Below, piece after piece: positions 17,670 through 55,279 of a stretch of DNA of 64,000 nucleotides. The notes below the pieces were generated by a model that saw only the letters and a list, made by a program, of their open reading frames with translations, ran no database searches and was not told where the DNA came from. Source of the stretch: Zancudomyces culisetae HAW-14-8. Taxonomy: Eukaryota > Fungi > Kickxellomycota. The translations under genes and the position numbers were made by a program. The stretch lies in contig JBNJNM010000006.1 of the NCBI GenBank assembly GCA_052426225.1, positions 310,001 to 374,000 on the forward strand, given 5' to 3'. Each line of letters starts with the position of its first letter. Positions within the stretch are counted from its first letter, which is position 1.

Positions 17670-18620
17670 ATAACCAGGTCATCAATTTGATGCTCGACAA
17701 CACTCGAGTTAAGACCAAGCAGAAGAAATATCTGAACCCGAAGACCAAGTTCCTACAGTGGCTTTCACAATCTTCAATCTCCATAGAAAACGTAACAGTC
17801 GTTGACGTTATCAACTATCTGGAACAGCAGCGGAAGGCGCTAAACTGGAGAATCGGAACAGTCAAGAACTACAAGTCCGCCATTCTTGAAATAACCAGTG
17901 ATTGGGCTTCTTTCAGTGACGATCCACTAATGAAAGAGTATCTCAAACAACTATCTTCATCAAACGTCAGATCCTTTGACAATCCGCTTTACGACATCAG
18001 TCCAATTATTGACCACATCAGGAAACTTGGGCCTAACTCCAGAATGTCAAAGTATGACTTGACAGCAATACAATGCTGACTCATAGCCTTCTGTGACTTT
18101 CTCAGGCCAAGCGACATTGAGAGGATTGACGACAGCAAGACGTCAGTGACAAGAGAATACATCAAGTTTATTATTGTTGGACCAAAGGAAAAGCGCAATG
18201 GAACTCCAATTGAAAAAGTTTCAATAATCCATGCACACTCTGACAAGAAATTATGTCCGGTTGTAACCTATCAGGTTTACAAAAAGTGGATTGCGGTTAC
18301 ATCATGCGTAAAACCACATCCTTTGCTCGACGGAAACTCAATATCCTATCTCATCAGGAGTCTCAAGGACCACAGTACTAACATTGGAGCACAGCGTATT
18401 AGCAAGCACATTAACAAACTTATGTCGCTTATACCATTACCGCCAAACGCTAAAGTACCAATAGCAAGAGCACTTGGATCAACTCGTGCTACTTCATCAG
18501 GTGCAACATACGATGATGTTATAACAAGGATTTTGGGCAAGCAGAGGAATATTTGATACATACTATCAGTTATCACGTAGAACAAGAGAAAATAAGACTC
18601 TACACGTATTAAACTCTGAA
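17640..18620 (+). pseudogene. DIRS tyrosine recombinase (stop at 18077, frameshift near 18525)
   Basis: FLRPSD, KEKR, LCPV, ARALGST, FDTYY segments. Confidence 0.85.
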
Positions 18621-20159: not shown

Positions 20160-21128
20160 TTGGTTGAAGAGTTAATGATGGTCCACCAATTAGATGAGAT
20201 CGCAAAATTAGCTATGCAACAAGCTTTGCAAGAAAGTCAAGCTCAAGCCCAGGCTCAAGCCCAGACACCCGCCCAAGTTCCCAGTCAGTTGCAGAATTTG
20301 CCTGCACCAAATCCGCAGCCAAGGATTGATGGTATCAGAATACCAGAAATCCAGAAATACTCAGGAGAATCAGGAAGGTTCCGAGCCTTCACCGCCGAGA
20401 TCAAGCGCCAGTTCTGGGCCAGACCAGACGTGTTCCAGAGTGACCATAACAAGATATGGTTCATCAGTTCTCACCTTGCCGGTCATGCTGCCCTGTGGTT
20501 CGATAACCTTATCGATACCCAATCACCGTTGCTCTCAGATTTCAAAGGGTTTGAGAATGAATTTCAAAAGAGATTCTCAGATCCTGGCCACCAAGCCCGA
20601 GCTATCACCCAGCTTCATAGTTGCCGCCAGTCCCAGCGTTCCGTCCTGGAATTTGCAACCGAGTTCAGAAACCTCGCCTCTCTCAGTGGATTCAACGAGC
20701 CAGCCAAAATTCACCTGTTTTACATCGGATTGGATACTAGCCTTGTCCAGCGCCTTGCCACTGAACCGCTACCAAACACCTTGGACCAGCTCATTGATCA
20801 GGTGATTGAGCTTGAGAACAGAATCAATGCCCGCAGTGCCTACCTGCCCAAGAGAAGCGTCCCATTCCGCAACTGGAGTACTCCGGCTCCACCGGTCTTC
20901 CCCCGTCCAGCCATGCCTGTCCCAGATCACCAGGCTTCTGAACCAATGGACGTTGATGCCGTCACCTCCCGTCCAAGAGCACCGCTAGATACAGCCGAAC
21001 GCCAGAGAAGATTAGCCAATAATCTTTGTCTATACTGTGGTCAGCCGAACCACATTCTCCGTAACTGTCCGCTCCGCAGGCCAAGACCCCCTATACCTGG
21101 GTTGCCAAAAGACAGTGCTCAGATGTAG
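20160..21128 (+). CDS. gag: Chromovirus Gag
   Basis: PMDVD motif and CLYCGQPNHILRNC zinc knuckle. Confidence 0.95.
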   Translation: MVEELMMVHQLDEIAKLAMQQALQESQAQAQAQAQTPAQVPSQLQNLPAPNPQPRIDGIRIPEIQKYSGESGRFRAFTAEIKRQFWARPDVFQSDHNKIWFISSHLAGHAALWFDNLIDTQSPLLSDFKGFENEFQKRFSDPGHQARAITQLHSCRQSQRSVLEFATEFRNLASLSGFNEPAKIHLFYIGLDTSLVQRLATEPLPNTLDQLIDQVIELENRINARSAYLPKRSVPFRNWSTPAPPVFPRPAMPVPDHQASEPMDVDAVTSRPRAPLDTAERQRRLANNLCLYCGQPNHILRNCPLRRPRPPIPGLPKDSAQM

Positions 21129-24100
21129 TCCGGGAGTTACTCCTGAGCGTAGCAAATAATTCTAATATTTCTAGCAATAAATTTCATATTAAAGTTGTTT
21201 TAAATAATCTACACGAACTTGTTGCATTAGTGAACTCCGGTGCTTCAGCCAACTTTATTCGTCAAGATTTATTAGAAAAACTAAACCTCCCAACCGTTGA
21301 AGCAGAAAAAACCATTGTCCTAGAAAGCGTTGATGGACACCAGATATACCCAGGGGGCATAAATGTCAAGGTTGATAATGCCCATATCAAGTCCGGTCCT
21401 AACCACTCTGAACACCTAGACCTTATCCCGATTCCAACCAATTACGCTGACATCATATTTGGATTACCCTGGTTACAGAAACACAATCCTAGTATAACTT
21501 GGCCAGACCTCCAGATCCACTTTGACTCTGACTTTTGCAGTACAAATTGTGTTGATACCCACTCCATCCAGGCCGTGTTCAAGTCACCTGAAGAACCAGA
21601 CCCAGATCCAGATCTAGTAGAACAAAATACCAGTCAGAATACGTCCACAAACCCAACCATCCTCCAAAGGGTGTTGAATAGATTATCAACTACCCTGCTT
21701 CCACACAGTGCCAAGTTGCTCGAATCGGTCAAGTTGGACGATTCAAACACTGAAAATCAAAGATTTTCACCGCCTCCGTCTCCTGATCTCCCCAGCCCAG
21801 CTCCGTCAAATCCATACGCCAGAATTGAAGAGATTCTTCCTGTTCCTGTTCCTGCACCAGTCCAATCAGTCACTCCAGAACCTGAAACCCAAAGTTTGCC
21901 CAAACCCACCGCTATTGAGAATCGAGTAAATAACCATGTTAAGCAAATTTCTGAGCCCCGTCGTCCAGTAACCCCTGTTCCAAAAGTACCACTCAGACCT
22001 GAACTTCCCAAAGCAATCCTGAAGAAAATTGAGCCAAGAGAACCAGTCGTCAGATCCCGGCCATTTCATAAAAATACCCCAGTCACCACCCCCGAGCCAG
22101 AATATTCCTTGGATCCAGATCCTGTAACTTTTGCCGTTTCTGAGTCCCCGCTAGAGTACTTGGAAGAATTTCCGCAACTTCCAGTAATATACTCTGAATT
22201 CAAGGAAGTGTTCAATCCCAAGTCTGCCGTCTCACTTCCTCCTCACCGCCGTTATGACTGTCCTGTCAACACCAAAGAGGGTTACACCCCATACTGGGGG
22301 CCAATATACCCGCTATCTGAAGTAGAGTTAGAGTCTCTAAGAGGTTACATCCGCGAAAACCTCACCAATGGCTTCACCAGACGCACTGTTTCCCCTGCCG
22401 GTGCACCAATCATGTTTGTAAAGAAGAAGTCTGGAGACTTGCGCCTTTGTGTTGACTACCGCCGATTGAACGAAGCTACCATCAAGAATAGGTACCCATT
22501 ACCTAGGATTGATGAGGCGTTCGATCGGCTGCGTACAGCCAAGGTCTTTACAAAATTGGATCTCAAAGGTGCCTACAACTTGGTGCGGATCAAGGAAGGT
22601 GACGAGTGGAAAACTGCATTTAGGTGCAGATATGGCCACTTTGAGTACCAGGTCATGCCATTTGGCTTGACAAATGCTCCCGCTACCTTTCAGCACTTTA
22701 TCAATGATGTGTTACGAGATGTATTGGATCTCTATGCAATTGCATACCTTGACGACATCTTGATATTTTCCAATGACACTGACACTCACATCAATCATGT
22801 GAAATCTGTTCTGAAAAAGCTGCTTGAAAATGGTCTGTACTGTAACGCCGAAAAATGTCACTTCCATATCAGGGAAGTTGAATTTCTAGGCCATGTTGTG
22901 TCTTCAGATGGAATAGCCACCGATCCTGCTAAAGTCAAGTGTGTAAAGGAATGGCTACCACCCACCAATGTCAAGGAGGTCCAGAAGTTTCTCGGTTTTG
23001 CCAATTACTACCGAAAGTTTATCCCATACTTCTCGCTGAAAGCCCTGCCAATCACAAGACTTCTGAAAAAGGATACACCGTTCGTTTGGAGTAAGGAGGC
23101 AGGTGAAGCCTTTAATACTCTTATCCAGGATCTCACCACTTCCCCCGTTCTCAGATACCCTGACCCAGGAAAACAGTTTATTCTGGAAACTGACGCCTCA
23201 GACTACGCCATTGGGGCTGCTCTATCCCAAGAAGATGAAAACGGTGATCTCCGTCCTTGTGCCTACTACTCTTACAAACTCAACACTGCCGAATCCAACT
23301 ATAATATCTATGACAAGGAACTTTTGGCAATCATCAAGGCTCTCAAAGAATGGCGACATCATCTGGAAGGCTCCTCCATCCCGTTCAAGATTCTTACTGA
23401 CCATAAGAATCTGGAGACCTTTAAAAATCTGAAGTCACTCAACAGAAGACACGCAAGGTGGTCACTTGATCTCAGTAGATTCAGCTTCATCATAACCTAC
23501 AGGCCTGGATCTCAAGGAGGCAAACCTGACGCTCTTTCTCGTTTGCCCAATCACACACCTGATAAGGTCGCCAACAACAACATCATAGGCGAAGACCACT
23601 TCATAGACATTATCAGCATAGTGGACAGTGATTTTGCTCAAGAAATCGCCAAATCCAGCAAAGCCCATCTAGAAGGATTATTGGATGCCGCAAGATACCA
23701 GAGCAGCCATAAGTCTAACGAGCCAGTAGAAGTTGAAGATGGGATTGTAATGCTTGGAAACCGTGTTGTCGTCCCCGACAAAATGAAGCCGCAAGTTGTA
23801 AGTTCTAGACATGACAGTGGCCCAGCCGGCCATTTTGGCGCTAAAAAGACATTGGAGCTCGTGGAACGAGACTTTTGGTTTCCAGGAATGCGCAAATTTA
23901 TTAAAGAGTTTGTTCAAACCTGTGATACATGCAATAGATCAAAGGACAGAAGACACAAAGTTTACGGTAAACTACTTCCGCTACCCGCTCCCTCAGGCCC
24001 ATGGAAATCTATCACCATGGATTTCATAACTGATCTTTCTCCATCCAACAAGCACACTACTATTATGGTAGTGGTAGACAGGTTCACTATAATGAGCCAT

Positions 24101-25060
24101 TTCATCCCGCTTAAGAAGCTGCCATCCTCAGAAGAAACTGCCTCCGCCTTTTTCACACATGTATTCAAGCTTCATGGACTTCCAGACGTCATAATCTCAG
24201 ACCGTGGAACCCAATTCTCGTCCAAATTTTGGAGTTCACTATTCAAACTGCTCAAAGTTGATACTAGAATGTCTACAGCCTTCCATCCAGAGACAGACGG
24301 TCAAACGGAGCGGGTGAATCAAACATTGGAACAGTATCTACGCTGTTTCATCAACTATCAGCAAGATAATTGGTTTGAACTGCTCCCAATTGCCGAATTT
24401 GCTTATAACAACACTCTCCACTCCAGCACTAATACTTCTCCTTTCTTTGCTCTATATGGTTACCATCCAAGATTTGATCCTCAAATCACTAAAAACGTTC
24501 ACGTCCCCAGCGCTACTGATAGGATAAAACAACTCAAAGAACTTCAATCAGCCCTCACTTCCATACTTAACAAGAAATCTCAGGAATATAAAAAGTATGC
24601 TGATGTAAACCGATCTGAACATCCAAAGTATAAACTAGGTGACAAGGTTTGGCTATCCAGCCAAAATATCAAAACTCAAAGGCCTTTTAAAAAGCTTGAC
24701 CATAGACTTCTAGGCCCATTCACTATTTCAAAAATCATCAATCCTGTTTCTGTCCGCTTAGACCTCCCGCCATCAATGAAAATCCATAACAATTTTCATG
24801 TCTCGTTATTGGAACCGTATATCGAACCCAGCAGTAACCGCAGATTATTAAACAGTCTTCCTCCACCCCTAATTATAAATGGAAATATAGAATATGAAGT
24901 TAAGGCTATTTTGGATTCTAGACTTGTACGGGGTAAAAAATATTACTTAGTTGATTGGAAAGGCTTTGATATAAGTGAAAGAAGCTGGGAGCCGATTGAA
25001 AACATAAACGCGCCTCAACTATTGAAAAAATACTATAAGACATATCACAACAAACCATAA
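21110..25060 (+). CDS. pol: Chromovirus Pol (PR-RT-RH-IN-chromodomain), in -1 frame to gag
   Basis: -1 frame open from 21110; YLDD, ETDAS, HHCC, DDE integrase, C-terminal YEVKAILD..YLVDWKG..SWEP chromodomain; protease site reads NSGA. Confidence 0.95.
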   Translation, partial: RQCSDVVRELLLSVANNSNISSNKFHIKVVLNNLHELVALVNSGASANFIRQDLLEKLNLPTVEAEKTIVLESVDGHQIYPGGINVKVDNAHIKSGPNHSEHLDLIPIPTNYADIIFGLPWLQKHNPSITWPDLQIHFDSDFCSTNCVDTHSIQAVFKSPEEPDPDPDLVEQNTSQNTSTNPTILQRVLNRLSTTLLPHSAKLLESVKLDDSNTENQRFSPPPSPDLPSPAPSNPYARIEEILPVPVPAPVQSVTPEPETQSLPKPTAIENRVNNHVKQISEPRRPVTPVPKVPLRPELPKAILKKIEPREPVVRSRPFHKNTPVTTPEPEYSLDPDPVTFAVSESPLEYLEEFPQLPVIYSEFKEVFNPKSAVSLPPHRRYDCPVNTKEGYTPYWGPIYPLSEVELESLRGYIRENLTNGFTRRTVSPAGAPIMFVKKKSGDLRLCVDYRRLNEATIKNRYPLPRIDEAFDRLRTAKVFTKLDLKGAYNLVRIKEGDEWKTAFRCRYGHFEYQVMPFGLTNAPATFQHFINDVLRDVLDLYAIAYLDDILIFSNDTDTHINHVKSVLKKLLENGLYCNAEKCHFHIREVEFLGHVVSSDGIATDPAKVKCVKEWLPPTNVKEVQKFLGFANYYRKFIPYFSLKALPITRLLKKDTPFVWSKEAGEAFNTLIQDLTTSPVLRYPDPGKQFILETDASDYAIGAALSQEDENGDLRPCAYYSYKLNTAESNYNIYDKELLAIIKALKEWRHHLEGSSIPFKILTDHKNLETFKNLKSLNRRHARWSLDLSRFSFIITYRPGSQGGKPDALSRLPNHTPDKVANNNIIGEDHFIDIISIVDSDFAQEIAKSSKAHLEGLLDAARYQSSHKSNEPVEVEDGIVMLGNRVVVPDKMKPQVVSSRHDSGPAGHFGAKKTLELVERDFWFPGMRKFIKEFVQTCDTCNRSKDRRHKVYGKLLPLPAPSGPWKSITMDFITDLSPSNKHTTIMVVVDRFTIMSHFIPLKKLPSSEETASAFFTHVFKLHGLPDVIISDRGTQFSSKFWSSLFKLLKVDTRMSTAFHPETDGQTERVNQTLEQYLRCFINYQQDNWFELLPIAEFAYNNTLHSSTNTSPFFALYGYHPRFDPQITKNVHVPSATDRIKQLKELQSALTSILNKKSQEYKKYADVNRSEHPKYKLGDKVWLSSQNIKTQRPFKKLDHRLLGPFTISKIINPVSVRLDLPPSMKIHNNFHVSLLEPYIEPSSNRRLLNSLPPPLIINGNIEYEVKAILDSRLVRGKKYYLVDWKGFDISERSWEPIENINAPQLLKKYYKTYHNKP

Positions 25061-25189
25061 GAGCTCATTATATTTTATTATTTAACCAATATTATACCTA
25101 AATACTTATCAAAAAAAATTATAAAAACAACCTAACAACAACCTTAAAACAACTAAAAAGCATAAAAAATTATAAAAGAAAAAATAAAA

Positions 25190-25452
25190 AAGAATGAACT
25201 TAGGAGGGCGCTAACGTCTTGGGCCGCACAATCACGTGATTCGAATTAACTGCTCGAGATCCCGAAGGAGTTATCGGAGAGGTGAAACGGTCCGGTACTA
25301 GTCCCGAAGGACGTTATCGCGCACATTGGCCCCGTGAAACATCTCATCCACTCTACAGCTAATTACTTCCCAATTACGGTCTTACAGCGAAGGATCGAAC
25401 CAGGGTCCTGCAGAATACAAGTTCGACGCCTTAGCCACTCGACTATAAGCTC
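25190..25452 (-). ncRNA. Putative Pol III ncRNA: tRNA-like head (A and B boxes), ~179-nt structured body, oligo-T terminator
   Basis: A box TAGTCGAGTGG (25445-25435), B box GGTTCGATCC (25401-25392), two cUUCGg hairpins, no T4 run until ~25191; homolog at 33149-33319. Confidence 0.65.
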
Positions 25453-26379
25453 ACATTTTTGTCCAAGATATTATTTTTATATATTTAATATATTCTTTGA
25501 AGGGGGGATAATGTCAGAATCGCATTATTTACCCATATGTTTTAATATATATTTTTAATCATATTTAATTACCTTTGAATCATAACTTGGGAACATTATG
25601 TTTCCCAACTTAAATAAATTAGTTTCCTGACAATTATATAGCTAGAAATTTAAATATTGGCCATATAGTTAATGATATTAATAGTTTATATATATTTTAT
25701 GTAAAATATTTATGATTAACTACGTGATAAAATATTATATGTTTGTGGCCTAGATATATTTCAAAAATAAAATAAATATTTGTATCATACACAGTTGTCA
25801 AGTCCATACCTGGACTTACTATTAGTTGATTAAATTAATGTTATATTATCAAAAAACTTTGATTATTTTATAATTTAAATGATTTTAAATATCAATTCTT
25901 TAAAATGATAATATATTTATAAATATATAAAAGTAAGATATTTATACATTTATCAAGATACAAGCAAACCCATAAATTATTATGTCGGCAAAAAGCAAAA
26001 AAAAAGAAAACAAAAATAAAAATCTATATTAACAAAGTCATAGCGTTAAATAAGAGTTCTGATGATATTTTAAAAATTCAATTTAAAGAATATTATTCTC
26101 TATGTGTTTTTATATAATAATTATATTTAATTTATATACCTATTCATTTGAAATTTCATCTCAATCTCCAAAGATCAAAAAAAATAGAGTAAATAAGAAA
26201 AGATCTAAGTAATCTTCGTAGATGAACTTAGATTGAGACAAGATCGCGAGCATTCTTAACAGATGAAAGAAGATTATGTTGAGATGAGATTAACTGAATT
26301 TTAACATATAAACCTAGGTTGTGACTAGATTGGAAGTATTCTGTTCAAATTTTGGAAGATTAGGAGAATCGGGAAAATA

Positions 26380-28200
26380 TATTTCGGATAGAAAACCAAT
26401 TCTGTCAGATAGGAACGAGATTGTCGAGATAGTCGGTAAAACGAATCGAAAACCGAACGAGACAATCAGTAACCTTGCGACACGACTTCATCGATGCTTG
26501 CGCCAGCCTCTGTTGCTAATGTCAAACCTAATGTGCGGGCCTTCGGTCTCTTTTCACCTTCAGGTATAATTAGCAAATCTAAAAAGTAATTTATTCTTTT
26601 ACTTATCCTTTGAGAAGTTACCTGTTTGTTTGTATCTATAAGACTTCTAATTAAATAAACTTATCTTATTCTTTGTATTCCTTCTGTGTTCTTTGAGATG
26701 AATAATGCTTCCTTCCCTATTTTAGTAATATTGTCAAGATCTGGAGTCTGATGAGTTATATTAATTATTATAAATGTTATTGTATGAATGTATACAAGAT
26801 ACTAGCTACTGAATCCAAGACATGAAAATTGTACTCTTTTTATACTTTTTTCCAGCCTTGGTTTTTGAACAAAATAACTAGAAAACTGCGGAATAGCTAA
26901 ATATCCAAGCTAAAGAAAAACGTGTTTGATTACTAATCCAATTTGATTAGTAATCAAACAAAAATCAAACTCGAATGAAAATAAAATTCAACATGTGTAA
27001 ATTATTACGTAAGAAAAATTAAGAAATAAAGTGAATTTTCGGTAATGTTCTAGAATGTTTCCAGACATTCTAAACATTACTGCGAATAAAATCAAATGAT
27101 TCTAGAACGTTTTCAACATTCTAGAATCAGTTCATGACACAGATGGCCAAGAGGAAACAGAGCTTGGAAGTCAGTTTGTCTAAGGACATAGAAGGGTTAG
27201 GTCCATAAGACTTTATTTCCTCGATTATAGGTGTCTATTCATAGCAGTTTGAAGCTAAATTCATAGTTTTTGTTGTAACTATAGATTTTATGAAGTCGTT
27301 AAATAAATCATTGAAATAGACCTGCTTATGTCCAATGAGTTGATGATGGCAGTGGAATAATTCCGGATAGTGCCACAAGACCAATTATTTTTATAATGAC
27401 CTATGGATAAAAAGTTAATAAGATCAGCAGACTAGATATCAGATACCATTAAGCTGTGATCATGGCAATACTTCAGGAAACGGTTTTGAATGTAAGCGTA
27501 ACGAGTCTCTAGGTGCTGCTGATTGTAGTTACTAGAGAGGATGGCTCGGGCTAGGTCGTTAAGACCTTTCTGGTCATACCGTGACCGCTTAATCGCCAAG
27601 CGGTGAGCATCCAGCTCTTGTTGGCGTTCATCAACCGCTTTTCGCTTTTCGGGTCGGCTAATACCTGGTGGGCTGGGATTGGTAACGGCTTCTGGACTAA
27701 TAGTTTCAGTAGGACGGAAACCACAGGGCAGACTTCCAGAAGGGGGTAATCAGGGTTATTGTTTGTTTTTCCCTTTTGATCATCTTGATGACTTGCGGGA
27801 TCAAGTTCCATGGGGGACACGCATACGGGTTGGTCCAAAATTTCCAGTGATGCTGGAATGCGTTTGTCTGAGACGCCAGAGGGTCCGGATACCAACTGAC
27901 AAACGCCGGAACCTTCCTGTTCTGTCTCGTAGCAAATAAATCTACGTCTTGGGGACCGAACCGGTGGTCGATCTTGTGGAACATGGGATTGGAGATTTCC
28001 CATTCCACTTGAGCCGTCAACCGGGAGGGCGCATCCGCAGCGTTGATGGCTGATGGGATGTAATTTATTTGGGGTTTCGTGCTCGTGGTGAGACAGTGGT
28101 TTCAAATTTCTTCCGTAACTTCCAGTAACAGGGATAAACGGAAACCTCTCATATTCGTAATGTAAGCAATCGTCGCATTGTTGTCGAAATACAACAAAAA
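26380..28200 (-). mobile_element. Second DIRS element, 3' portion (RNase H end, methyltransferase, YR), decayed
   Basis: DLFAT, CPPWNLI, WMLTAWRLS; YR text YLIRSL..SQRISK..RPKARTLG..FDSFYRLSR at 26400-26660. Confidence 0.88.
26732..27139 (-). mobile_element. Solo LTR inserted in the DIRS YR gene (family of 63447-63858)
   Basis: Highly similar inverted copy of 63447-63858; no TSD, adjacent YR sequence deleted. Confidence 0.85.
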
Positions 28201-28511
28201 GCTCCTTTATACAACTTAAGGAAGCTTTAGTGCTTATTTTTGGCATGTTTCATTACATTATTGGATATTTAGTGTCTGAGTTAGCCTTATTCCGATACTT
28301 ATTTTATCATATTTAATACTTTCTAATAATTTTATGATAATATTTTTTGAGGTAACAAAAAAAATTCACTAATTATATTTATTATATAATCGAGATTTAG
28401 ATATGAAGAGAATTATAAACTTTGATATTTTAGAGATATCATTTGATAATTCAATATAGTGTAGTGGTTTGACACTTGGCCATTATTAAATTTTGTAAAT
28501 ATTAATATCTA

Positions 28512-28943
28512 CTGTCGTATAATGGGTATACGACAGAAAATCATTAAGTAATTTTTATAGTATATATTTATTATATATATTATTATATATATTTAATATA
28601 TATTATTCAACCTATTAACTTAAGTATAAACTATATAAGTTTTTATACATGTATCTGTTGATATATAAATTGCTATGTGTAGAATTATAATATATAATAG
28701 ATTGATTTTATAGTGTAAACAAAACCCTATTAGGAAATAATTTGTGCAATAAATTAGTTAATACTATAGCAAAGTAATATTAGTATAAACGTGTACCCTT
28801 CCAAAATTATATTTTTAGAAAGTAAAATATAGATAAAATATTAGTTTAAATAAAAATAACAATAAATCTAATAACTGCTACGATAGCGAGCAAGATAATA
28901 TCCCTGAAACAGCACTATATAGTTGGATATTATAAAACACAAC
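28512..28943. mobile_element. Old solo LTR
   Basis: TGTCGTAT...CACAACA termini; similar to 9329-9750. Confidence 0.55.
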
Positions 28944-29399
28944 ATTATAGTATTTAGGTTTAAACTGTGTATTTAGTACTGATATTGATATATTCATAAA
29001 TAATTTTAGTTTGCTATACAGATATTGTAAACTTACGAATTACTATCCATATTAAGTCTATATGAATACTTTAAATAATATTGAAAAAATTATAATCTAA
29101 ATTTACAACAAATACATAAAGTTCAGTTTAGCGTATAGAATAGATTAAACTATACTAGTTAAATCGATAATTGAAATTTATCCATTTAACTTTCATATGT
29201 TTCTTCATCCTATCGCTGAGTACATTATATAAAATGATTTTATACTATATAATTTAATATGTTTTCTAGTGTTAGGAATGGTTTTATCCTGGAACAACAA
29301 TATAGTTTAAATTATTGTTAAATAATTAAAAATATATATTAGTTCCTAATTCGTCATGAAATTAAAAATTTGTCATTATAACTAGTTATTAAATTTTAT

Positions 29400-31230
29400 G
29401 TGAATAATTTACATTTATGGGCTTGAATATACGAACGAAAAATCAAACAATTCTTAGAATTATAAATCGAGATTAAATAATTTATAAAATTTTTAGTAAT
29501 TTAATGAGAACCAGTATGTATCGAATAGTCTAACACGAATGCATATAATAAAATCATATCTATTAATTAAGGAATGAAATTGTTTCGGATAAGTTAAATA
29601 ATCTTATGATTAATTTAATCAATATGTTCTATGTTAAAATTGATAAATATAATTACTCAAAAATCATTAAATAAAAACTATGTATAATGATAAATACATT
29701 CTGATATAATTGATAATCTAAATTCATAACAAAATTTATTTGCTAAATTCATGTTAAAATCGATAATGATAATGTTAAGTTTAGCGATAAGTAGATACTT
29801 TACAAATTTCAATTTTACATATTCAAATTTTATAGCTAAAATTTATTATGTTTAAGTTTTTGATCATAGTAAAATACTGTGATAAAATTTTATAAAACAC
29901 TTCGAAATTCCGTTGGGATACATCGAGATAAATATATATTTATTAACACATCTAATATTATATTTTTCTAAATACCGACTTCTACCTAAAAATATTAATC
30001 AAGCATAACTAATCCACGGTCCAAGTTATAAGCAGCTCTTGTTTATAACACTTCGTCGCAATATATTTATAGATCCCATGTCCTAATTTGTTTGTAATAC
30101 AGTAAGCACCTGTATTCCGTTCATCAAAATTCCTAGAATATCTTTATTATTATTAAGAACTTGAACTCCTAAGTTAAATGACCTTTTTCTTATATGCTTG
30201 TTGTATCTTTTCTTGTCTATTAATTTTATTTTTGGGTTCTAATAGAATGATTTTTTTCTATATCCGTTTATGTTTTTCTAAAAATGTTGAAGTTTATAGT
30301 TCTGTTATCATCCGCTTGTATGTTATATTGGTTCCAAATTGCAGGAATATTTAACTTTTGTCCGTGGACCAACTCCGCAGAACTTTGTCCTATGCTCTTA
30401 TGTTGGACGGTTCTCATTGCCAACAGAGCTCGCCAATTATAAGTATCCCATTTTCCTGGTTTCAAAGGAATAAATTTCCTTGATATTGTTAGCGAATTCC
30501 AGGTTCCAGTTCGCTATTGTGTAAAAAATATATTTATTTGATAGAAAAACTATACTATGTACTAATGTTGTTAAGTTTTCATTATAGTAACTATAACTTT
30601 AATAAATAGACCAAACTTGTATTTTACGTGTTTATTTGATGATGTTTAAACTATCTGAATAACTATCATATTTATAATTTTTTAAAACAACTATTAAACT
30701 TAAAACCTAATATATTTTAAACTTAAAACCTAATATATTTTAAACTTAAAACTATACTATTTAAAATAAAAATCTAGAATGTTGCTGTAGAAAAATTCCA
30801 GAAGGATAAATAAACAGGCAACACATAATATACTAAATAACATAAAATAAATATTATCTTATATAAGAGATAAACCTAAATATTAATAAATAGAAATAAA
30901 TATGTAATTGGTAAGTTATTATTATATAATGTCTAGTGGTAGCTCTAGCCACTATATAACAATATATGCTTAATTCTTATAATAGTTATTTCGGTCTGAC
31001 CGGTCGATTGTGGCATGTACGCAACTATTTGTTTATGGTTTATGCATAAATTTTATTAAAAAGGCTCACTACTTCACCCGTGAAGTGTGTACCACGATCT
31101 GTAATAATTGCCGTAGGTACTCCAAATCTTGAAACAATTTCGTCTACGATTACAGCGCAAGTAGTGTCGCTGTTTGCTGCTTTTGTCACTATGGCTATTG
31201 GCCATTTGGTATAATAGTCAACAGAAACGT
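29400..31230 (-). mobile_element. Gypsy integrase remnant plus decayed 3' LTR
   Basis: VDYYTKWP, SRFGVPTAIITDRG, ALLAMRT; 29880-30395 nearly identical to reverse complement of 3930-4430. Confidence 0.8.
30487..30961. mobile_element. Solo LTR with 4-bp TSD ATAT (family of 47178-47632)
   Basis: TGTTAG...TATAACA termini; near-identical to 47178-47632 plus a short tandem duplication. Confidence 0.9.
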
Positions 31231-31784
31231 ATATACAGAACTCAAAAAAACTTTCGAATGATATTGATTACGTATTATACAATGTAATATCTCTTATATT
31301 TCTAATCGTATTAATTTTAATTAACAATTTTAATTAATATTATTGCTCTAACACGTATAAATATTATAAAAATTTTTAACGAATTAATATTAATTCGTAT
31401 TTATGTTTATAATATTAACGTATAATATTATTGTAGAAAATAACTAAAAAAATTTAGGCATAATTATTTGTAAATTTATCTATTGTCAAATATTAGTTAT
31501 AAGGTGTTATATTACGTATAACATATTTATTATATATGAAACCAAAGTTTGATAATTTAGGATATAAAAATTAAACATAAAAATATTATACTAATAAATA
31601 TTAAGTCATAAACTATAGTAATGGAATCTCGTATGGAAGTATTGCTTTATCTATTAATATAAGCCTTAGTTCTATTATTTTTTAATAATATATCTAATAT
31701 ATTTCAATAATAAATAAGTCCTAAAAGCCGAAATATTAGGAAACTCAAATGAGAAGTTGATAATTGAATATATAATTCATGAAA

Positions 31785-32220
31785 ATTTGATACAGCGACA
31801 TAGCTACAAATTTCTCAAGGATATGGCCTCGTAACTATGTTACTTCAAGCAGTGCGAAATAGCTTGAATATTAATGGTTTTTATGCAAAACCTAAGGTCA
31901 AAAAACCTATGCTAAAATTAGGCCATATTAAACATCATGCATTTGCTAAAAAATATCAGCATTGGACTGTGGAAGACTGGAAACGTGTGATATGGCCAGA
32001 CGTGACTAAAATTAATAGATTTAGGTCAATGGGCGTATGTGGTGCTGGAAAAAACAAGGGAGCCAGTTAAAACCGAACCATGTTAAAAAACTATAAAACA
32101 TGGTGGAGGTTCAATCATGATATGGGGATGCATGACTTCAGAAGGTCCAGGATATCTTACTATAATTGATTGCGGACTTAATGCAGAATTGTACTGTGAT
32201 ATTCTTGAAGACGAACTGGT
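31785..32220 (+). mobile_element. Tc1 fragment (same family as 6420-8018); its right end resumes at 39966-40216
   Basis: Near-identical to 6985-7428; right TIR found after the LTR ending at 39965. Confidence 0.88.
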
Positions 32221-32372
32221 TGTCACAGAACGAGTTTTATTAGTTATACAGGTTGTAATTATGAAGGAATTACAGCTAGGCAAATGTTATTAATTAAATA
32301 CTAATTAAATATTAGATAAATGTTATAGTAGGTTAGATTTCATCTGATTGTCCATGACATTATCCCCCTTTT
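32221..32372 (-). mobile_element. 3' LTR (32221-32359) and PPT of a truncated chromovirus
   Basis: TGTCAC...CATGACA termini, related to 39827-39965; PPT AAAAGGGGGATAA on minus strand. Confidence 0.8.
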
Positions 32373-32388
32373 AAAACCATTACAAAAG

Positions 32389-32622
32389 TGTCGTATAGTA
32401 AACTATACTGAAGAGTTGTCCCAATTATATTGGTTAGTTTTGTTTATGTATTTTATAGAATTGGTTTAAATATGTTTGAATAGAATTAATAAATAAATGG
32501 TCCTTTTCCACAGATAAAAAATAAATATATAAAATTATATAATATTGAAATTGACCCGTCCCGTGTAGTACTTGGTAGCGAAAGTTACTAAGTAGGACGT
32601 TAAGCATTTTCACTACACGACA
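32389..32622. mobile_element. Solo LTR with 4-bp TSD AAAG
   Basis: TGTCGTAT...ACACGACA termini, exact TSD. Confidence 0.88.
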
Positions 32623-32629
32623 AAAGTGA

Positions 32630-32707
32630 TTGTGTTTGGCCTAGACATAGGCTTCTCGCACTTTGCCATTTGGCCCGGGTTCGAATCCCGTTGATTTCGA
32701 TCCTCGG
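32630..32707 (+). promoter_or_regulatory. tRNA-like Pol III promoter remnant in chromovirus 3' UTR (antisense to element)
   Basis: A-box-like TGGCCTAG at 32637 and B box GGTTCGAATCC in a CGGG/CCCG T-arm; cloverleaf not intact. Confidence 0.6.
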
Positions 32708-32824
32708 TGTCAGGAAACTAATTATTTAAGTTGGGTAACTTAATGTTCCCAAGTTAGGATACAAAGGTTATAAATATGATGAAAATATATATTAAAAATT
32801 ATGGGTAAATAATCGATTCTGACA
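32708..32824 (-). mobile_element. Solo LTR of the 20019 chromovirus family, TSD CTCGG
   Basis: Inverted similarity to 20019-20139; exact 5-bp TSD. Confidence 0.9.
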
Positions 32825-33064
32825 CTCGGTGTAATTAATTGGTCACAGAACGAGATTTATTGAATAAACAAGTTGTAATTCTTAGAGAATTACAACGAAG
32901 CATAAACGAAATGATTAAATAGAACATAAAATATTAAGAATATTATGAGTAATATGAAGTAATATTATTGGCTATATCATTATCCCTCTCCCATAATTAT
33001 AAATATTTTCTTTTAAACTACTATGTATGTAGAGAAATTTTGTATTAAAATAAATTATTTAATA

Positions 33065-34620
33065 TTTTTTTTTATTATATATAGTTTGTAAATAAAAAAT
33101 ATATAACAATCGAATAAAGCGATATTCGACTTCTATTTATTAATTGAAGCTAACGTTGTGAGCCATACCATTCGGTAATTCGCGCATCAGTAACGGCTTC
33201 CTAAAGGAAATTTAGAAGAGGTGGGAGGCTCCGGTGCTCGCTTGCGCTTGCGCACATTAACCGCCTATAACCATACATTCTTACCAGCTGATTCGTCTTC
33301 TCCCTGACGATCTTACAGCAAACTCGCTTTATTTTTAAGCGAGTTGGTTCGATTTTAATATTTCATTTCGCCAGGGGGAAGTTGGCATATTTATACATTT
33401 TTTTAAAATTTAGTAAAAAATATTTCAAATTAGTATATTTTACTTTTTCAATTTTTTATTTTTAATTTTTTGAAAATGTGTTTAATTATAGTTCATATAT
33501 AAATAAATTACTAAAAAAGTTCGAATATTCCCTGTCTTCCAAAAAAATAAAAATCTCGAAACATTATAGTATAGTACGCTCAAAATTAAGTATAGGTATT
33601 GTAAATCGAGAACTGCTTCGACTATTCGACTAGATATTCATCACCTGGGTCAAAAGAGAACCAGGAACATTTGACCTTAAGCCATGTTCGCTTGAATTTG
33701 TTAAGCGTTTGGTTTTGGTAATCTTGACTAATCTTTTCGCGGAGTAAGCCTTCGAAGCGGTGAAATAGTTCAGCTCCATTCAGGTTAGTATTTGACAGTG
33801 AGCTTTCGGAACGTGCACGGTATATATTTCGTAGTGCTAGTGCGTGAATTGTATTACTTGCAGGTATTGTTCCTTTGTATTTATTTAACATTCCATAAAT
33901 ATCCTTTATGTTCAACTCTGTTGTGTTTTCTAATCTTTTTTTGGCTACTCCTTTTTCAATAAACTTTTTTACCATATTCCAGTATTCTTGTATGCGTTTA
34001 CATTCGTAAAATATATGTTTATAATCTTCATTTGGTTCTTTACAGTAACTACACCTACTGTCCCTATATATGTTGTTATTGTCTTTGTTCCACATGCCGA
34101 TATCTTTTCCTGAGATTATCCCTCCATGATACATCATTCTTAAGAAACTTTTTATCTTAGGTTGTACGTTTAATTTCCGTATATTTTTCCAATTGAACCC
34201 CTCAATATCTTCATCTTCTACCCCCATTTTCTTAAGGTTTGGCTTGGCCCCCTGTCTATATCTATCTCCATCGTTTGCCCTTCCTGGTATTGTCTTGCCA
34301 TCTTTGTAGTATATACCCATTTTGTGTTACCACAGATTATGATTTTTCCTTTGGGTATCTTCACTTGATTTTCGCTTTTTTCGGTACCAAATAATTTTTT
34401 TTCCTCAATTTTGTTTAGCCTAAACTCTCTCCTTTTTTTCCAATTTCGATTTCGTATTTTGATAAATCATCGTTACTCTAAATTTTTTTACAATTACCGA
34501 AGAACTCGGATACATTTTATATACCCAATTGCTTCAAAAATAATTTATCTTATTTGTACAGTGATTATCAATCATATTCTTTACAAAATTAACGCTTAGA
34601 ACGTTTTAATCATTATATCC
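33065..34620 (-). mobile_element. 5'-truncated non-LTR retrotransposon (L1/Tx1-like ORF2 C-terminus with zf-RVT), 3' UTR and A-tail
   Basis: ORF 33622-34320 with W..I....VQPKIKSFL and CSYC....EDYKHIFYEC..IQEYW; T9 run at 33065-33073. Confidence 0.8.
33149..33319 (-). ncRNA. Second copy of the conserved structured RNA motif
   Basis: Collinear conserved blocks with 25210-25388 and compensatory stem changes. Confidence 0.65.
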
Positions 34621-36310
34621 CCAATTTTTAACGTTTGTAATATCGATTTTATTGAATTTTTTGTATAAATTGGCAAATTTTGACCAGAAAAATTCCGTTT
34701 TGGCACATTTTGAGTCATTTTTTTACTGAAAAATGCGTCTGCGTGCACAATATCACCGCTATCATATTTTTATGAAATAATTGCAAAGTTAAATATGATT
34801 CCGCTATTTCTTTCCACAAAAATTTGCAATTATCAATATAATCCATTTACCTCGAAATAAAATCAAATCTTCATTTGAAAAATAAGGAATTCAACTGGGA
34901 ATCAATTGGGATTAGTCCCCTGCTATGAATTCCTTGACTGAACGATGCATGTGAGGTAACCAGAAGTCTAATTTCAGTAGTTCAACTGTCTTTTTGTATC
35001 CATAGTGACCTGTTAAACTGCTATCATGCCTTGAGCTGATCACTTTGAAAACTGATGCTTTAAGTACCACTACTAAATTTCCCAGAGTAATGAGATTGTC
35101 TGGTGTTGATACTACAGCGAGATGTTTTTTAGCTGCATCTGTTTCTGCCCTTTTAGTTAATTCTATTCGCTCGTTTTGTGTTTGTAGGACGAGATCATAT
35201 AGGAGAAACTGATTGGTGGTTATTAGACTGTCGATAAAAACTGAGGCTGGGAGTATTGTTTTGTCTTGTAAGGCGCGGTCATGATCCAAGTAACGTGATA
35301 AAGTGTCTTGTTTTCCACCAAGCTTTCCTGGCCTATAGGTGATCACAAAGTCGTATCTGCTGAACTCCAATGACCATCTTGCGTGGCGTCTATTGAGTAC
35401 CTTTGAGGTTTTGAAAGTCTCCAGGTTCTTGTGGTCTGTCAAAACGATGAACTGGTGTTGAGCTCCTTCTAGGTAGTGTCTCCATTCCTTAAGTGCCTTT
35501 ACTATTCCTAATAGCTCCTTATCATAAACATTGTAGTTTAGTTCTGCTGCCTTGAGCTTGTAAGAGTAATAAGCGCAGGGGCGGAAGTCACCTTTCTCAT
35601 CGGCTTGAGACAGAATTGCACCAATGGCATAGTCTGAGGCGTCTATCTCATTATGAACTGCTTACCGGGGTCAGGATACTGTAAAACGGGTGAAGTCGTG
35701 AGCATGGTTTTCAGTGTGTCATATGACTTTTGCTGATCAGGACCCCAAATAAACCTGGTGTCTTTCTTCAGCAGATTGGTCATCGGCAACGAAATCTGGG
35801 CATATTCAGGAATGAATTTCCGGTAATAGTTGGCGAATCCAAGGACTGACTGAATGTCCTTACAATCCTTTGGAACCTTCCATTTGTGGATTGACTGGAT
35901 CTTGGCGGGATCGGTACTGATTCCATTTGAAGTGACGCGGTGTCCTAAGAAATCCACTTCCTGTTTATGGAATTCGCATTTTTCCAAGTTGCAGTACAAT
36001 CCATTTGTTAACAATTTTGCCTAAACTTTATTGACATGAAAGATGTGGTCCTGGAAATTGTCGGAAAATATCAGAATGTCATCAAGGTAAGCGATGGCGT
36101 AACGATCAAGCACAACTCTTAGAACATCATTGATGAAATGTTGGAAAGTCGCGGGCGCATTTGTCAAGCCAAAAGGCATGACATTGTATTCAAAATGTCC
36201 ATAGCGGCATCTGAACGCGGTCTTCCATTCATCCCCCTTCCTGATCCTGACTCGATTATAAGCACCTTTCAAATCTAGTTTGGTGAAATATTTGGCAGAT
36301 CTAAGCCTAT

Positions 36311-37089
36311 TGTTATAAACAATGAGCTGCTTATAACTTGGCGTAGAGATTTGTTATGCTTGATTAATATTTATTTAGGGAGAAGTAAGTATTTAGAAAA
36401 ATATAATATTTGATGTGTTGATAAATATATATTTTTCTCTGATGTATCCCAACGGAATTTCGAAGGGTTTTAAAATTTTTCATCAGAGAATTTTACTGTG
36501 AAGAAAAACTTAAAGTCAATTAATATTAGCTATAAAATTTGTCTATGTAAAATTGAACTTAGTTTTAAGGTATCTACTTATTGTCAAACTTGTAATTTTC
36601 ATTTGTTGATTTTAACATAGATATGGTTTATCAATTTTAACATTGATTTAGTATATCAATTTTAACAATGATTTTGTTTATCGATTTTATCATGGTTTTT
36701 GTTTATCGATTTTAGCGTTGATATTGTTTATCGATTTTAGCATTGATTTTGTTTATCGATTTTATCATTGATTTTATTTATCAATTTTAGCGTTGATTTT
36801 ATTTATCAATTTTATCATGGATTTGGTTTATCCAATTTTTTTCATGGATTTGATTTATCCTATTTTTTCATGGATTTTTGTTAAATTTAATTATTGGAAA
36901 ATTTCTTGATTATGCTTGAAAATTATCCCAATAATAATATCAGAAAGTTCATGGTGAATTTTGCAAACATGATTCCAATGTCGGAATGGCATATTTGAAA
37001 AACGGAAATGAAAAAATAAAATAGGTTAGATTTTTAGTAGGCCAAAATGTAACTAAAAATTATGTTCCAGGAATTGGCCATTCCTAACA
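36311..37089. mobile_element. Solo LTR with internal ~21-bp tandem repeats, TSD CCTAT, inserted in RT
   Basis: TGTTATAA...CCTAACA termini, exact TSD; family also at 4273-4938 and 43935-44707. Confidence 0.92.
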
Positions 37090-38415
37090 CCTATCAAAGG
37101 CTTCATCGATCCTGGGCAGAGGGTATCTGTTTTTCATAGTCATATCGTTGAGCTTACGATAGTCTACACAGAGGCGGAGGTCACCAGATTTCTTCTTAAC
37201 GAACATTATTGGCGCTCCAGCGGAAGATTTGGACTTTCTGATGAATCCATTTGCTAGGTTTTCAGTAATGTAGTCACGAAGAGTCAGGAGTTCCCTTTCA
37301 GACAATGGGTAAATAGGGCCCCATGGTGGATTGGATCCTTTTTTGATGTCAATTTGGCAGTCATATGATCTGCGAGGAGGGAGTTTGGTGGCTAGGGATA
37401 GGTCAAATACCTTGGCTAGAGAAGCATGTTCAGGTGGAATTTCAGGAATGTGACTGGTATCTGCAGATTTTTGTTCAGGAATTGACTGTAACAGCGGAAT
37501 ATCGGAACTTGGTGTCAGACTAGTTTAGTAATTTTTTTCCATATAGTTTTTTTTTTACTGGTTTTTTTGTCGTCTTTTTTATATAATTATTTGGTTGAAT
37601 CGGTATAGTAAGAAGTGGCATTCCTATGTCAAATGCGGAAGATACGGGTTCAGGCGGTGGCAAATCTTGTTGGGGTAAAATATTGGAAGCTGGTGATCTT
37701 GAAATTTCAGGTTGGATAGGCAAGCTTTGAATACGAGTTACTGGAGGTGGTAAAGATACCATTGGTGTGGGTCGTCCCAGACGGGGTAAAAATGTCTCTT
37801 GAGGCTCATAATAGCTGATCTGAGGAGAGTTCACGGTGGAAGTCAATGAGCGTTCGGAATATGATGAGTCTGAATCTGAATGGTATGCGGATACATGGCT
37901 GCCATCTGGCTGGTAGGCCTCAAGGTCATGATTGGCCTCTAAAACTTGGACTTGTGGTGTCTGAACGTGAGATACGGGTACTTCAGTGTTGTGCTGTAAT
38001 ATATCACTTGGGTCCATATTTTGCCAATGTATTGCTTCTGGTTGGGTATCATAAAATCTTCCAAGGTCATCATTGGATTCGCTGTCAGAAGATGTATCAC
38101 TTTCTAAATAATCATCCGAATCATCTTGGCTTCTATCTTCTGAGTCCATACTGTAATCTGATTCGGATACGCTCATTCGGTCAACAATATTTTCTTCATC
38201 TAGTACTAATTTATCATCCATCAGCTGACTTAGTTTTTTGATATCATTTTTTGAAATTCTGCGGTTAGGATCAAGGTTCAGATTGTTAACGGCTACAGTC
38301 TTAGATGTGGAGGACCTGGTCTTCAGGGTGAGCTTTTTCCAATTGATATCGGGGTTATGTTTTTGTAACCATGGGAGACCTAATACAATTTCGGCATGAG
38401 TGGCGGGTATCACGT

Positions 38416-38536
38416 TGTCAGAATCGCATTATTTACCCATAAGTTTTAATATTTATTTTTAATCATATTTATTTACCTTTGAATCCTAACTTGGGAACAT
38501 TAAGTTTCCCAACTTAAATAAATTAGTTTCCAGACA
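38416..38536 (+). mobile_element. Solo LTR of the 20019 chromovirus, TSD CACGT, inserted in the protease region
   Basis: 121 bp, near-identical to 20019-20139, exact TSD. Confidence 0.95.
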
Positions 38537-41439
38537 CACGTATAGGTCCGAGGTAAAGTGGTATTTATCCTTGGTACTGAGCTTGATGTTGCGGGCTACT
38601 GATTTTATACCTGTATTTGTGAGCGGTTTTCCGTCAATAGTTTCAACAGATATCGGACTTGATAGATCTTCAGTGGGCAAGTCTAGTAGCTTTACAAGGT
38701 TTAAACTAATAAAATTTTCTGATGCACCGGAATCAATTAGTGCATTAACAACTATCGAATTATTAATTATTAACTTTATTAAAAATTTATTAGCTTGAAA
38801 TCCTTGTACGGTTAGCCCCAGTAATACCTTGCCAGTTATTCCTGGGGTTCGACTTTTAAATTAGGCTCTGTAGGTCTTGGGATACGTGACGGGCAATTTC
38901 TCAATATGTGGCCTAGTAGTCCACAGTAAATGCATAGACTGTTGAGGATCCGTCTCTGGCGTTCTTCAGTTGTCAACGGTCCTCTTGGCTTCGGGACTAC
39001 GGCATCAACGTCCATTGGCTCTGGCGTCTGAGGGCGGTACTGTCTTGGCTGGCGCTGGAAGTTCTGGTTTTGGTACTGGTGTTGCTGAAACTGATTTTGC
39101 TGGTAATTGTGGAACGGCTCGTTTATTGGCTGAAATGGTCTGGGCTGTCTTGGAAGCGGGTTTGCTGCTGGATATGGACTTCTGTACTCGGATTTGTTCA
39201 TATAGCTGAGGTTGGAATTAATTGTGTTTTCCAACTCAACTACTAGAGTTATTACTTCATCCAACTTGCTTGGAATCTTGGTAGCGATCAGGTGACGGGT
39301 AATTCTGGTACTGAGACCGCGCCTAAACATGTCGATATTGGCAGCCTCGCCAAAATCGCATATCCGAGCTAGGTTCCTGAAGTCCACTGCATAGGCCATA
39401 ACAGATTGGTTACCCTGTTTAAGTTCATGAAGCTGCTGGATGGCACGTGATTGGTGGACGGGGTCGGACAACCTAAGCTTAAAAATTTCCACAAACGCTT
39501 CATATGATACCAAGAGTTTGGGTTCAGTTGAAGTTACAGGGAGCTTGGCTTCGGATTCCAGAAAATCGTCAAACCACGTGGCGGCATGACCCGTGAAGTG
39601 GGCGCTGATAAAAGCAATCTTTTTTTTCTGTAGAAATAGCATCGGATTTTGCCCAAAACTGTATGCGGATCTAAGCCATGAATGGAACAAATTGTTCCGC
39701 GGCTCCGGAAAACTTCTCTATCTCGGGTGTCTTTGGCTCGGCTTCACTCATAATACTTATGATATCTTGATTAATATTTTCCAACAAAACTAGACTGATT
39801 AACTAGGAGTTGGAAGAATTACAAAATGTCACAGAACGAGATAGATTGAATATACAATTGTAATTCATAGAGAATTACAATGAAGCATAGCCGACATGAT
39901 TAAATATAAGTTAAAAAGTAAAGCTTAATTATGGGTAATAAGAAGTAATATTATTGGTTATAACAGATATACTAAATACTGTCTAATTAGTTTATATAAA
40001 TCATTATTTAGCAAAAAAATTGTTCAAATTAATATAATTACAAAAAGTTTAAATACTGTTGATATGCTGGTTCAAGTATTCTAAAAATTTGATAGGTAAT
40101 ACATGGTATATGGATGATAATATTTGTAATATTTATAGTGATACGATATAGTATTCGTGAGATATTCTAATTTTTTAATGAACATAAAAACATTCAAACA
40201 ATTTTTTGAGTCACTGGATTTGTTTACCTTCTACTGTCGTATAGTAAGATACAACGGAAGATTCTTTTTTATTTCTCATTTATATTTAATAAACGATTCA
40301 ATTAAAGATTTCTTAAATTATTGAATTTACTATAATATATACAATTAGATATTATAGATATATATTAATATATATATACAATTAAATAAAATAAAAAAAT
40401 TAATATATGCATAAATTATATAAATGACGTATACAACGTATCAAAAGAAAAGATGTGCTCAATTTAAATAAAATATTCTACAATATAAAATAGTTTGTGC
40501 CTTTTCATAATATTATTTTTGGAAGATGTTATAAAGTTATCTTTATAAATATAGTATAAGAGATATTAACTTAAATATTATATTAAACACTTTAGTAAAT
40601 AATATATTATATTAAATTAAATAAAGTTTTAATAAATATAAAATCTATAGTATCATAATGAAGATTGTGGACTATATATACTTTTCCTAGATAGTTAAAA
40701 TTAGATAATTTGAGTATTATACATGTGAGATAAATAAATGTCACATGTATTTTATATAAATATAATTAACATCATGGTAATAATATTATCATGTGTGAAT
40801 ATATATACATATTAAATTCTAAAAATTAAATCGAAGTGTCAATCCATTTTTTTATATTTATGAAGTAAATTAAAGATAAAATTTCAAATTAATTAAAATA
40901 ATTAAAATTAATATATCAAATATATAATAGATCTATATACTAATACAGAAAATATTAATAACAATAATTATCTTCTAAATGAACTTATAATGGCGAGATT
41001 GTAAATGTGGAACTAAATATTTTGTGTAGAATAAAAAGTATTAAAATATATAATCCGGATCTAAATGAATGTCATGACTCAGTTAATAAATTATAATTTT
41101 AACTATATTTAGTACTATAAACATATTGTTACATAATGTTTATACATTATGTAAAATCTAGTTAGTTAGTATTAGTTTTTAGTTTGTTGATTAGTAAGCT
41201 AAATTATATTAACTGCTTACTAATCCTACAATGCCTATAAACACTTGCGGATATGTGTTATTTATTAAATAGTGTTTTTATGAGCACAATCGATAGATAA
41301 TGATTATAATAGTCTTCTATTTTCTACATACTATATATCCTTATCAGCCAACAATTGTCGAAATAAATACAGAGGTAATTTGCTATACTATAATTTAAAA
41401 TAATATACCTATAAATAATTAAACCAACACAGCCCTGAC

Positions 41440-55265: not shown

Positions 55266-55279
55266 TAACACACAAATAT

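Follow-up and report, generated by a model that had tools for sequence, protein, structure and literature searches.

A candidate structured RNA module in the 3' spacers of two related chromoviruses of the fungus Zancudomyces culisetae

Introduction

Among the described systems, those grouped as TRIMp3 include Cassandra and Ajax, which are 5S-derived, and Helenus, which is tRNA-derived and found in fungi; for all three, an origin by insertion of a short interspersed nuclear element (SINE) into a long terminal repeat (LTR) element has been proposed (Kojima 2024, PMC10886601). The subject of this analysis is a pair of GC-rich islands, module copies A and B, in a 64-kb window (the whole stretch analysed, 64,000 nucleotides) of the Zancudomyces culisetae HAW-14-8 genome, at positions 310,001 to 374,000 of contig JBNJNM010000006.1 (assembly GCA_052426225.1), where each island lies in one of two related chromoviruses. 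For Z. culisetae, a harpellalean gut fungus, a 27.2-Mb PacBio HiFi assembly has been published (PMC12611240). Like TRIMp3, the locus appears to combine a small-RNA-derived sequence bearing RNA polymerase III (Pol III) boxes with an LTR retroelement that would copy it along. In TRIMp3, the Pol III sequence resides in the LTRs of short, non-autonomous terminal-repeat retrotransposons in miniature and is not accompanied by a separate structured body, whereas here it is found in the internal spacer of autonomous gag-pol chromoviruses, next to a putative 175-nt fold that is unrelated to tRNA or 5S, and one of the two copies lacks a tRNA-like part altogether.

Copy A also resembles SINE2 elements, including the types with a conserved central domain, in that an apparent, degenerate tRNA-like head with A- and B-box-like motifs precedes a body that is unrelated to tRNA and has been kept in both diverged copies. 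Unlike SINE2, the module has neither a tail related to a long interspersed nuclear element (LINE) nor an A-rich one, no target-site duplications are seen, both copies are in chromovirus spacers, and one is headless, with its boundary at the end of a helix. The stringent-type tails of UnaL2 and UnaSINE1, in which a structured 3' element common to a LINE and a short retroposon is recognised by the LINE reverse transcriptase (RT), are the closest model for an earlier interpretation of these islands, made from the sequence alone, which saw in them a mobile RNA module (a new ribozyme, RT-recognition element or silencing decoy) that had passed between an LTR retrotransposon and a LINE; unlike those tails, the module is not part of a LINE 3' end.

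LTR elements tolerate extra sequence between the pol stop and the polypurine tract, in either orientation. Cargo between pol and the 3' LTR of Ty3/gypsy elements is exemplified by the antisense open reading frames (ORFs) of the Tat/Ogre/Grande-type plant elements, and structured RNAs of 150-250 nt precede the 3' LTR in the case of the retroviral constitutive transport element (CTE), the RNA transport element (RTE) of intracisternal A particles (IAP) and the MusD transport element (MTE). The module occupies the same compartment as this Ty3/gypsy and retroviral cargo, for which either orientation is tolerated, but is set apart from it by description, the cargo on record consisting of protein-coding ORFs or sense-only cis elements, none of them known to be of the Pol III type.

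Two homologous islands

The two islands are:
25210-25388, minus strand: module copy A, 179 nt, 51% GC, antisense to chromovirus element 1
33149-33319, minus strand: module copy B, 171 nt, 50% GC, sense to chromovirus element 2, without a tRNA-like head

Read on the minus strand, the islands are collinear, with 117 of the 188 columns of the global alignment (62%) identical. The alignment score of 82 compares with 7.2 +/- 3.5 for 2000 dinucleotide shuffles of copy B (z=21), and the score on the reverse complement is 6. Every sequence block that the sequence-only reading had listed is found in both copies, and its claim of collinear homology stands. The spacing of the blocks is equal as well: GCTGTAAGAYCGT is separated from AATGTGCGC by 48 nt, and CACCTCT from CGAATYAC by 34 nt, followed by 18 nt to ACGTTAGC. 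Both copies have a GC content of ~50%, against 19-26% in the flanks. The similarity ends sharply at GCTG... and ...TAGC, ends that pair with each other, as had been noted before, and the flanks of A and B show no similarity (p=0.17 for the 5' flanks and p=0.19 for the 3' flanks). The islands are best read as two diverged versions of a single module of ~175 nt, a discrete unit with a closed RNA fold.

No third copy of the module is detected within the window by nhmmer, blastn or three covariance models. Scans for exact block patterns, two patterns each on metagenome contigs, prokaryote genomes and viral contigs, return 0 matches.

Conservation of the fold

A nested structure drawn on copy A alone consists of 46 pairs in helices P1-P8. 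The covariance model built from A with this structure (R1) matches copy B over the full model length with 79.6 bits (E=3e-19), compared with 30.7 bits for a sequence-only model of A (R2); the 234 bits that R1 gives on copy A are circular, the model having been built from it. The R1-guided alignment of A and B is free of gaps outside one apical hairpin, which carries a UUCG loop in A and, in B, a shorter stem with GCAA, a loop swap that the earlier reading had described correctly. In this alignment, 93% of the cells are paired, compared with 30-44% when the partners are slid, and 13 pairs are altered on both sides, compared with 1-3 with slid partners, counts that come from two sequences and a structure taken from one of them. 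The paired state is kept in 17 of the 23 varying pairs, against 9.4 +/- 2.3 when the variable bases of B are permuted (p=5e-4).

The pairing-preserving changes reported from inspection of the sequence are all present, namely ACGG/CCGU vs AGGC/GCCU, AUUAG/UUAAU vs AUCAG/CUGAU, CAC/GUG vs UAC/GUA and GUGC/GUAC vs GUGC/GCAC. The blocks that had been described as invariant and unpaired do occur in both copies, but their unpaired status is less certain, as CACCUCU may pair through UCU. An independent RNAalifold run also arrives at P3, P4, P5 and P6, the inner helices. Single-sequence folding of both strands yields no energy signal, and the numbers of pairs (46 vs 42 and 36 vs 34) indicate the strand of function weakly. 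Taken on the aligned sequences, the fold looks conserved between A and B; the compensatory pattern itself could date from ancestral functional copies and not from A and B themselves.

The module does not resemble any RNA family on record. Rfam 15 was searched with the window at gathering thresholds, and with the 8.7-kb region, each island (~200 nt) and the tRNA-like head of copy A (see below) at E<=10. Over the whole window, only two real tRNAs are matched at gathering thresholds; at E<=10, there is nothing in the 8.7-kb region, in either island alone or in the head alone. The absence of Rfam 15 matches extends to hammerhead, hepatitis delta virus (HDV)-like, twister and hairpin ribozymes, 5S, signal recognition particle (SRP) RNA, RNase P/MRP, small nuclear RNAs and tRNA, so that the earlier failure to place the module by eye is borne out. 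Judging by these searches, the module is outside every described RNA family. Candidates rejected by eye are the SRP Alu domain, with which CUGUAA is the sole shared stretch, the conserved regions of RNase P/MRP, and C/D and H/ACA boxes; a hammerhead core was rejected as well, CUGAUG being present in B and not kept in A.

Two related host chromoviruses

The islands reside in the following elements:
20019-25635, plus strand: chromovirus element 1, with LTRs, gag, pol, chromodomain and polypurine tract
32842-39965, minus strand: chromovirus element 2, with LTRs at 39965-39828 and 32979-32842 that are 84% identical

Element 1 has LTRs at 20019-20142 and 25512-25635 that are 95% identical and run TGTCAG...CTGACA, and full ORFs for both gag (20160-21128) and pol (21230-25060, 1276 aa), the latter with RT, RNase H, integrase, SH3_Tf2-1 and chromo domains (Pfam). 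Its polypurine tract, GAAGGGGGGATAA (25499-25511), abuts the 3' LTR. Copy A lies between the pol stop at 25060 and the polypurine tract at 25499, in antisense orientation, in agreement with the earlier placement of this copy in a chromovirus 3' region. Relatives of the element 1 pol in protein collections do not exceed 58% amino-acid identity.

Element 2 has a gag at ~39621-38857 and a polypurine tract at 32992-32983; its pol is 53-69% identical to that of element 1 at the amino-acid level and is cut at residue 895 (34924), where a LINE fragment starts. A solo LTR of the element 1 family (38416-38536, plus strand), with the 5-bp target-site duplication CACGT, is nested in element 2. The primer-binding sites of both chromoviruses (20108-20157 and 39790-39850) complement a stretch of their own LTR. 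In element 1, TTGGGAAACTT is an exact complement, over 11 nt, of AAGTTTCCCAA in its own LTR. Such self-complementary primer-binding sites point to Tf1-type self-priming rather than tRNA priming. By their domains and sequence, elements 1 and 2 are related, Tf1-like Ty3/gypsy chromoviruses.

Copy B lies ~160 nt upstream of GGGAGAGGGATAA and the 3' LTR of element 2, in sense orientation. Since B precedes the polypurine tract and LTR of a second chromovirus, A and B belong to one class of elements and share the same compartment. The spacers between pol and the polypurine tract of the two elements amount to ~0.9 kb, i.e. ~1.4% of the window, and hold both (2/2) module copies. The RT-coding DNA of the two elements is 68.6% identical, compared with 62% for the module, and the remainder of the two spacers is unalignable in either orientation. 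The chromovirus LTRs (121-138 nt) contain neither tRNA-like sequence nor module.

The LINE fragment next to copy B

Two features adjoin copy B on the side away from the LTR:
33450-34601, minus strand: 5'-truncated, L1-like LINE fragment with an A-rich tail at 33471-33440
33323-33343, minus strand: perfect 7-bp hairpin CTCGCTT/AAGCGAG, 3 nt upstream of copy B

The LINE that the sequence-only reading had recognised is real, and it can be called L1-like, given the APE endonuclease, RT and zf-RVT domains present in full-length relatives. Its ORF in the window (34320-33622, 232 aa, with a zf-RVT domain), recognisable only for the last ~220 residues, lies on the strand of B and terminates upstream of it, at a distance of 300 nt; it is 93% identical to Z. 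culisetae OMH79526.1 and has no exact match on record. The other part of the claim, i.e. that B lies in the 3' untranslated region (UTR) of this LINE, does not hold. Contig LSSK01001523.1 of Z. culisetae carries another copy of the LINE, which is 93.6% identical to the window from 34601 to 33453 and then diverges, both copies stopping at a common A-rich tail, CAAAAAA..TAAAAATAAAAA. Copy B begins ~130 nt past this tail (~33453), its nearest A-run is ~85 nt downstream, and models R1 and R3 find no module on the second contig, the sequence downstream of the LINE included. With the LINE match stopping ~130 nt short of B and the second copy devoid of the module, the LINE is a bystander and not the host of B.

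The tRNA-like head of copy A

Copy A is flanked by two features, the first of them a tRNA-like head fused to the module that the sequence-only reading had missed:
25378-25449, minus strand: degenerate tRNA-like head fused 5' to copy A, called by ARAGORN as tRNA-Thr(TGT) at the 85% threshold
25179-25191, minus strand: two T6 runs that follow copy A on its 3' side after ~20 nt and could serve as a Pol III terminator

The head has an A-box-like TAGTCGAGTGG, a B-box-like GGTTCGATCC that matches 10 of 11 positions, AGTGG, a 7-bp acceptor stem and a TGT anticodon; ARAGORN calls it at the 85% threshold only, not at the default. The 3' strand of its acceptor stem, CTGTAAG, overlaps the first conserved block of the module. 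The 3' flank of A is T-rich and lacks an A-rich or LINE-like tail. With a head that carries A and B boxes and T-runs following the module, A looks like a self-contained Pol III transcription unit. The region upstream of B shows no significant homology to this head. A role of the head as primer for reverse transcription was considered and rejected, as the chromoviruses self-prime.

The spacer of a third chromovirus

A comparable arrangement is seen in one further remnant:
32222-32705, minus strand: 3' end of a third related chromovirus, with LTR at 32222-32369 and polypurine tract AAAAGGGGGA

Antisense in its spacer (32557-32705, plus strand), there is a 10-bp GAAA-capped hairpin within an 8-bp stem, followed by a tRNA-like sequence (32623-32698, plus strand) with a perfect B box, which is otherwise found in the window only in the two real tRNAs. 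The unit at 32557-32705 has a fold z of -2.6 and is not homologous to the module. This remnant shows that apparent Pol III-like small units recur in the spacers between pol and the polypurine tract in this chromovirus clade.

In copy A, TTCGAATCACGTGATT (25229-25244, minus strand) resembles the T-loop and 3' strand of this tRNA-like sequence at 32679-32695 (plus strand; local alignment, p=0.04), which hints weakly at a tRNA origin for some of the module itself. A solo chromovirus LTR at 32708-32824 (target-site duplication CCGAG; region 32703-32842) and the end of the element 2 3' LTR (32842) lie close to the same tRNA-like sequence, with distances to its 3' end of <=~25 nt. This proximity is a hint that Pol III-like units inside elements may draw in further insertions.

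Competing explanations

Tentatively, and with somewhat less than even confidence, we favour the reading that chromoviruses carry the module as cargo, in the form of a small-RNA cassette whose probable source is a SINE-like Pol III RNA. Such a small RNA would have lodged in a chromovirus, and the module would be copied whenever its host transposes; in element 1, the antisense module would be made as its own Pol III unit, and in element 2, the sense, headless module would be made within the transcript of the element. Cargo is favoured because both copies fall within the small part of the window that the two spacers make up, the module has diverged about as much as the RT-coding DNA, and the rest of the spacers has become unalignable. 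If the module was inherited together with these spacers, its remaining alignable when they are not would mean that it has been under constraint. The antisense tRNA-like unit in the spacer of the third related chromovirus speaks for the same reading. What is observed is that A and B are homologous, where they lie, that the LINE is not the host of B, which motifs are present and that pairs are conserved between the two copies; transcription by Pol III, joint descent of module and elements, and whatever function the RNA may have go beyond this and are inferred.

A number of points weigh against carriage as chromovirus cargo. The module set consists of two copies from one 64-kb window, carriage is seen in one copy of each chromovirus family only, and the module is absent from three distant chromovirus relatives, which also have no tRNA-like sequence beside pol, bar doubtful relaxed calls in one of them (L004, of L004-L006). 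The antisense orientation of A and the sense orientation of B require an inversion or two separate acquisitions, and a promoter-like head is missing from B. The solo LTR and the LINE fragment interrupt element 2, and the stretch containing B could instead have come by LINE 3' transduction or as a separate insertion. The Rfam tRNA model does not match the head of A, and at the 85% threshold ARAGORN makes 12 calls in the window, 2 of them real tRNAs and ~10 others; the T-runs after A may be the mere complement of an A-rich UTR. As for the fold, copy A supplied the structure to which the alignment was then fitted, RNAalifold proposes another outer pairing, so that the outer helices are ambiguous, and the single-sequence folding energy is no better than that of shuffles (minus-strand z=+1.5 and +1.4). 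It is the opposite orientations, the headless B and the existence of only two copies that hold our confidence down.

The same observations can be accommodated by more conventional origins, among which an ordinary tRNA-derived SINE mobilised by a LINE deserves the most weight even though it seems improbable; A would be a full-length insertion in element 1, B a 5'-truncated or head-decayed member of another subfamily near element 2, and the SINE RNA would need its fold. In a classic SINE, too, a tRNA-like head bearing A and B boxes precedes an unrelated body, the genome has an L1-like LINE family with A-rich tails, B is headless, and the opposite orientations fit independent insertions. Yet neither copy has an A-rich or LINE-like 3' tail, no convincing target-site duplications are apparent by eye, the flank repeats being no more than AT-rich chance, and the closing helix, rather than some arbitrary point of truncation, marks exactly where the homology stops; moreover, the confinement of both copies to the chromovirus spacers (~1.4% of the window) and the separation of the module from the LINE 3' end are not what a LINE-mobilised SINE predicts. 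Decidedly less probable is that A and B were captured from the host, as copies or pseudogenes belonging to a family of non-coding RNA genes that is absent from Rfam for zoopagomycete fungi, in which case the compensatory pattern would stem from functional host genes. The conserved fold without an Rfam match and the ~50% GC kept in both copies would fit such an origin, and so would the leader of A: the yeast RPR1 and SNR52 genes are Pol III RNA genes with a tRNA-like leader upstream, a parallel to its head. Against this, both copies lie within transposons, none is seen in non-repeat DNA (of which the window has hardly any), nothing turned up when metagenome contigs, prokaryote genomes and viral contigs were scanned for the block patterns, and no universal small-RNA motif is recognised by eye.

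It is unlikely, too, that the module acts in cis in the genomic RNA of the chromoviruses (for instance in export, packaging, dimerisation or 3'-end formation, much as the transport elements do that some retroviruses and IAP and MusD have between pol or env and the 3' LTR), with B as the working sense form and A as an inverted relic. The sense position between pol and the polypurine tract in element 2, the conserved fold and the GC-rich island in an AT-rich spacer would suit this role, but the module is antisense in element 1, which is the more intact of the two and has complete ORFs for gag and pol, A bears a promoter-like head of its own, the differing pairs are kept in A as they are in B, which is unexpected for a dead relic, and nothing like the module occurs in the three distant chromovirus relatives. 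The exchange between an LTR retrotransposon and a LINE, with the module as a candidate new ribozyme, has very little probability left. It drew on the zf-RVT LINE ORF that ends upstream of B on the same strand; the second LINE copy matches only up to the A-rich tail at ~33453, with no module after it, and B precedes a chromovirus polypurine tract and LTR. The supposed unrelated classes are thus two related chromoviruses carrying the module in the same compartment. As to the ribozyme, no known family is matched, and the hammerhead-like CUGAUG of B is missing from A.

Returning to carriage as chromovirus cargo, a bolder version of it would make the module a new structured RNA family, with putative catalytic activity or binding to Gag or RT, and a Pol III gene belonging to the autonomous chromoviruses of zoopagomycete fungi themselves, i.e. 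a trans-acting small RNA made from either strand of the 3' spacer, with internal Pol III units that might in addition serve as landing beacons for elements that target tRNA genes; this we consider doubtful. If the module is a real expressed RNA and autonomous chromoviruses carry it, it would extend the occurrence of Pol III sequences in LTR elements to full-length elements and add a new fold, and would represent a new RNA family for a poorly sampled fungal lineage. If it is an ordinary SINE or a private insertion, its interest would be local to the annotation of Harpellales transposons. For annotation, the warning is that tRNA-like or small-RNA-like matches in such genomes can be retrotransposon cargo.

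Other features of the window

The window as a whole is a transposon nest with hardly any host genes. A DIRS-like retroelement (15061-18556, plus strand) encodes RT, RNase H and a Dam-type DNA methyltransferase domain and has a GC content of ~50% in a background of ~25%. Two copies of a repeat, at 6902-7428 and 31704-32220, are 89% identical; their assignment to a Tc1/mariner transposase is an unverified guess made by eye from one translated segment.

Two young Ty3-like elements, at 49044-55266 and 56449-61628, have LTR pairs that are 99.8% and 99.7% identical, and a Zancudomyces culisetae Pro-Pol protein shares 78% identity with the ORF of the former (49879-54768). Their outer LTR ends are found upstream of two tRNA genes, 14 nt from the 5' end of tRNA-Arg(TCT) (55280-55353, plus strand) and 8 nt from that of tRNA-Lys(TTT) (56370-56441, minus strand), respectively, as if Pol III start sites were targeted in the manner of Ty3 in this fungus. 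The DNA separating these tRNA genes contains an imperfect palindrome (55469-56324) of 880 nt that is 82.5% self-complementary.

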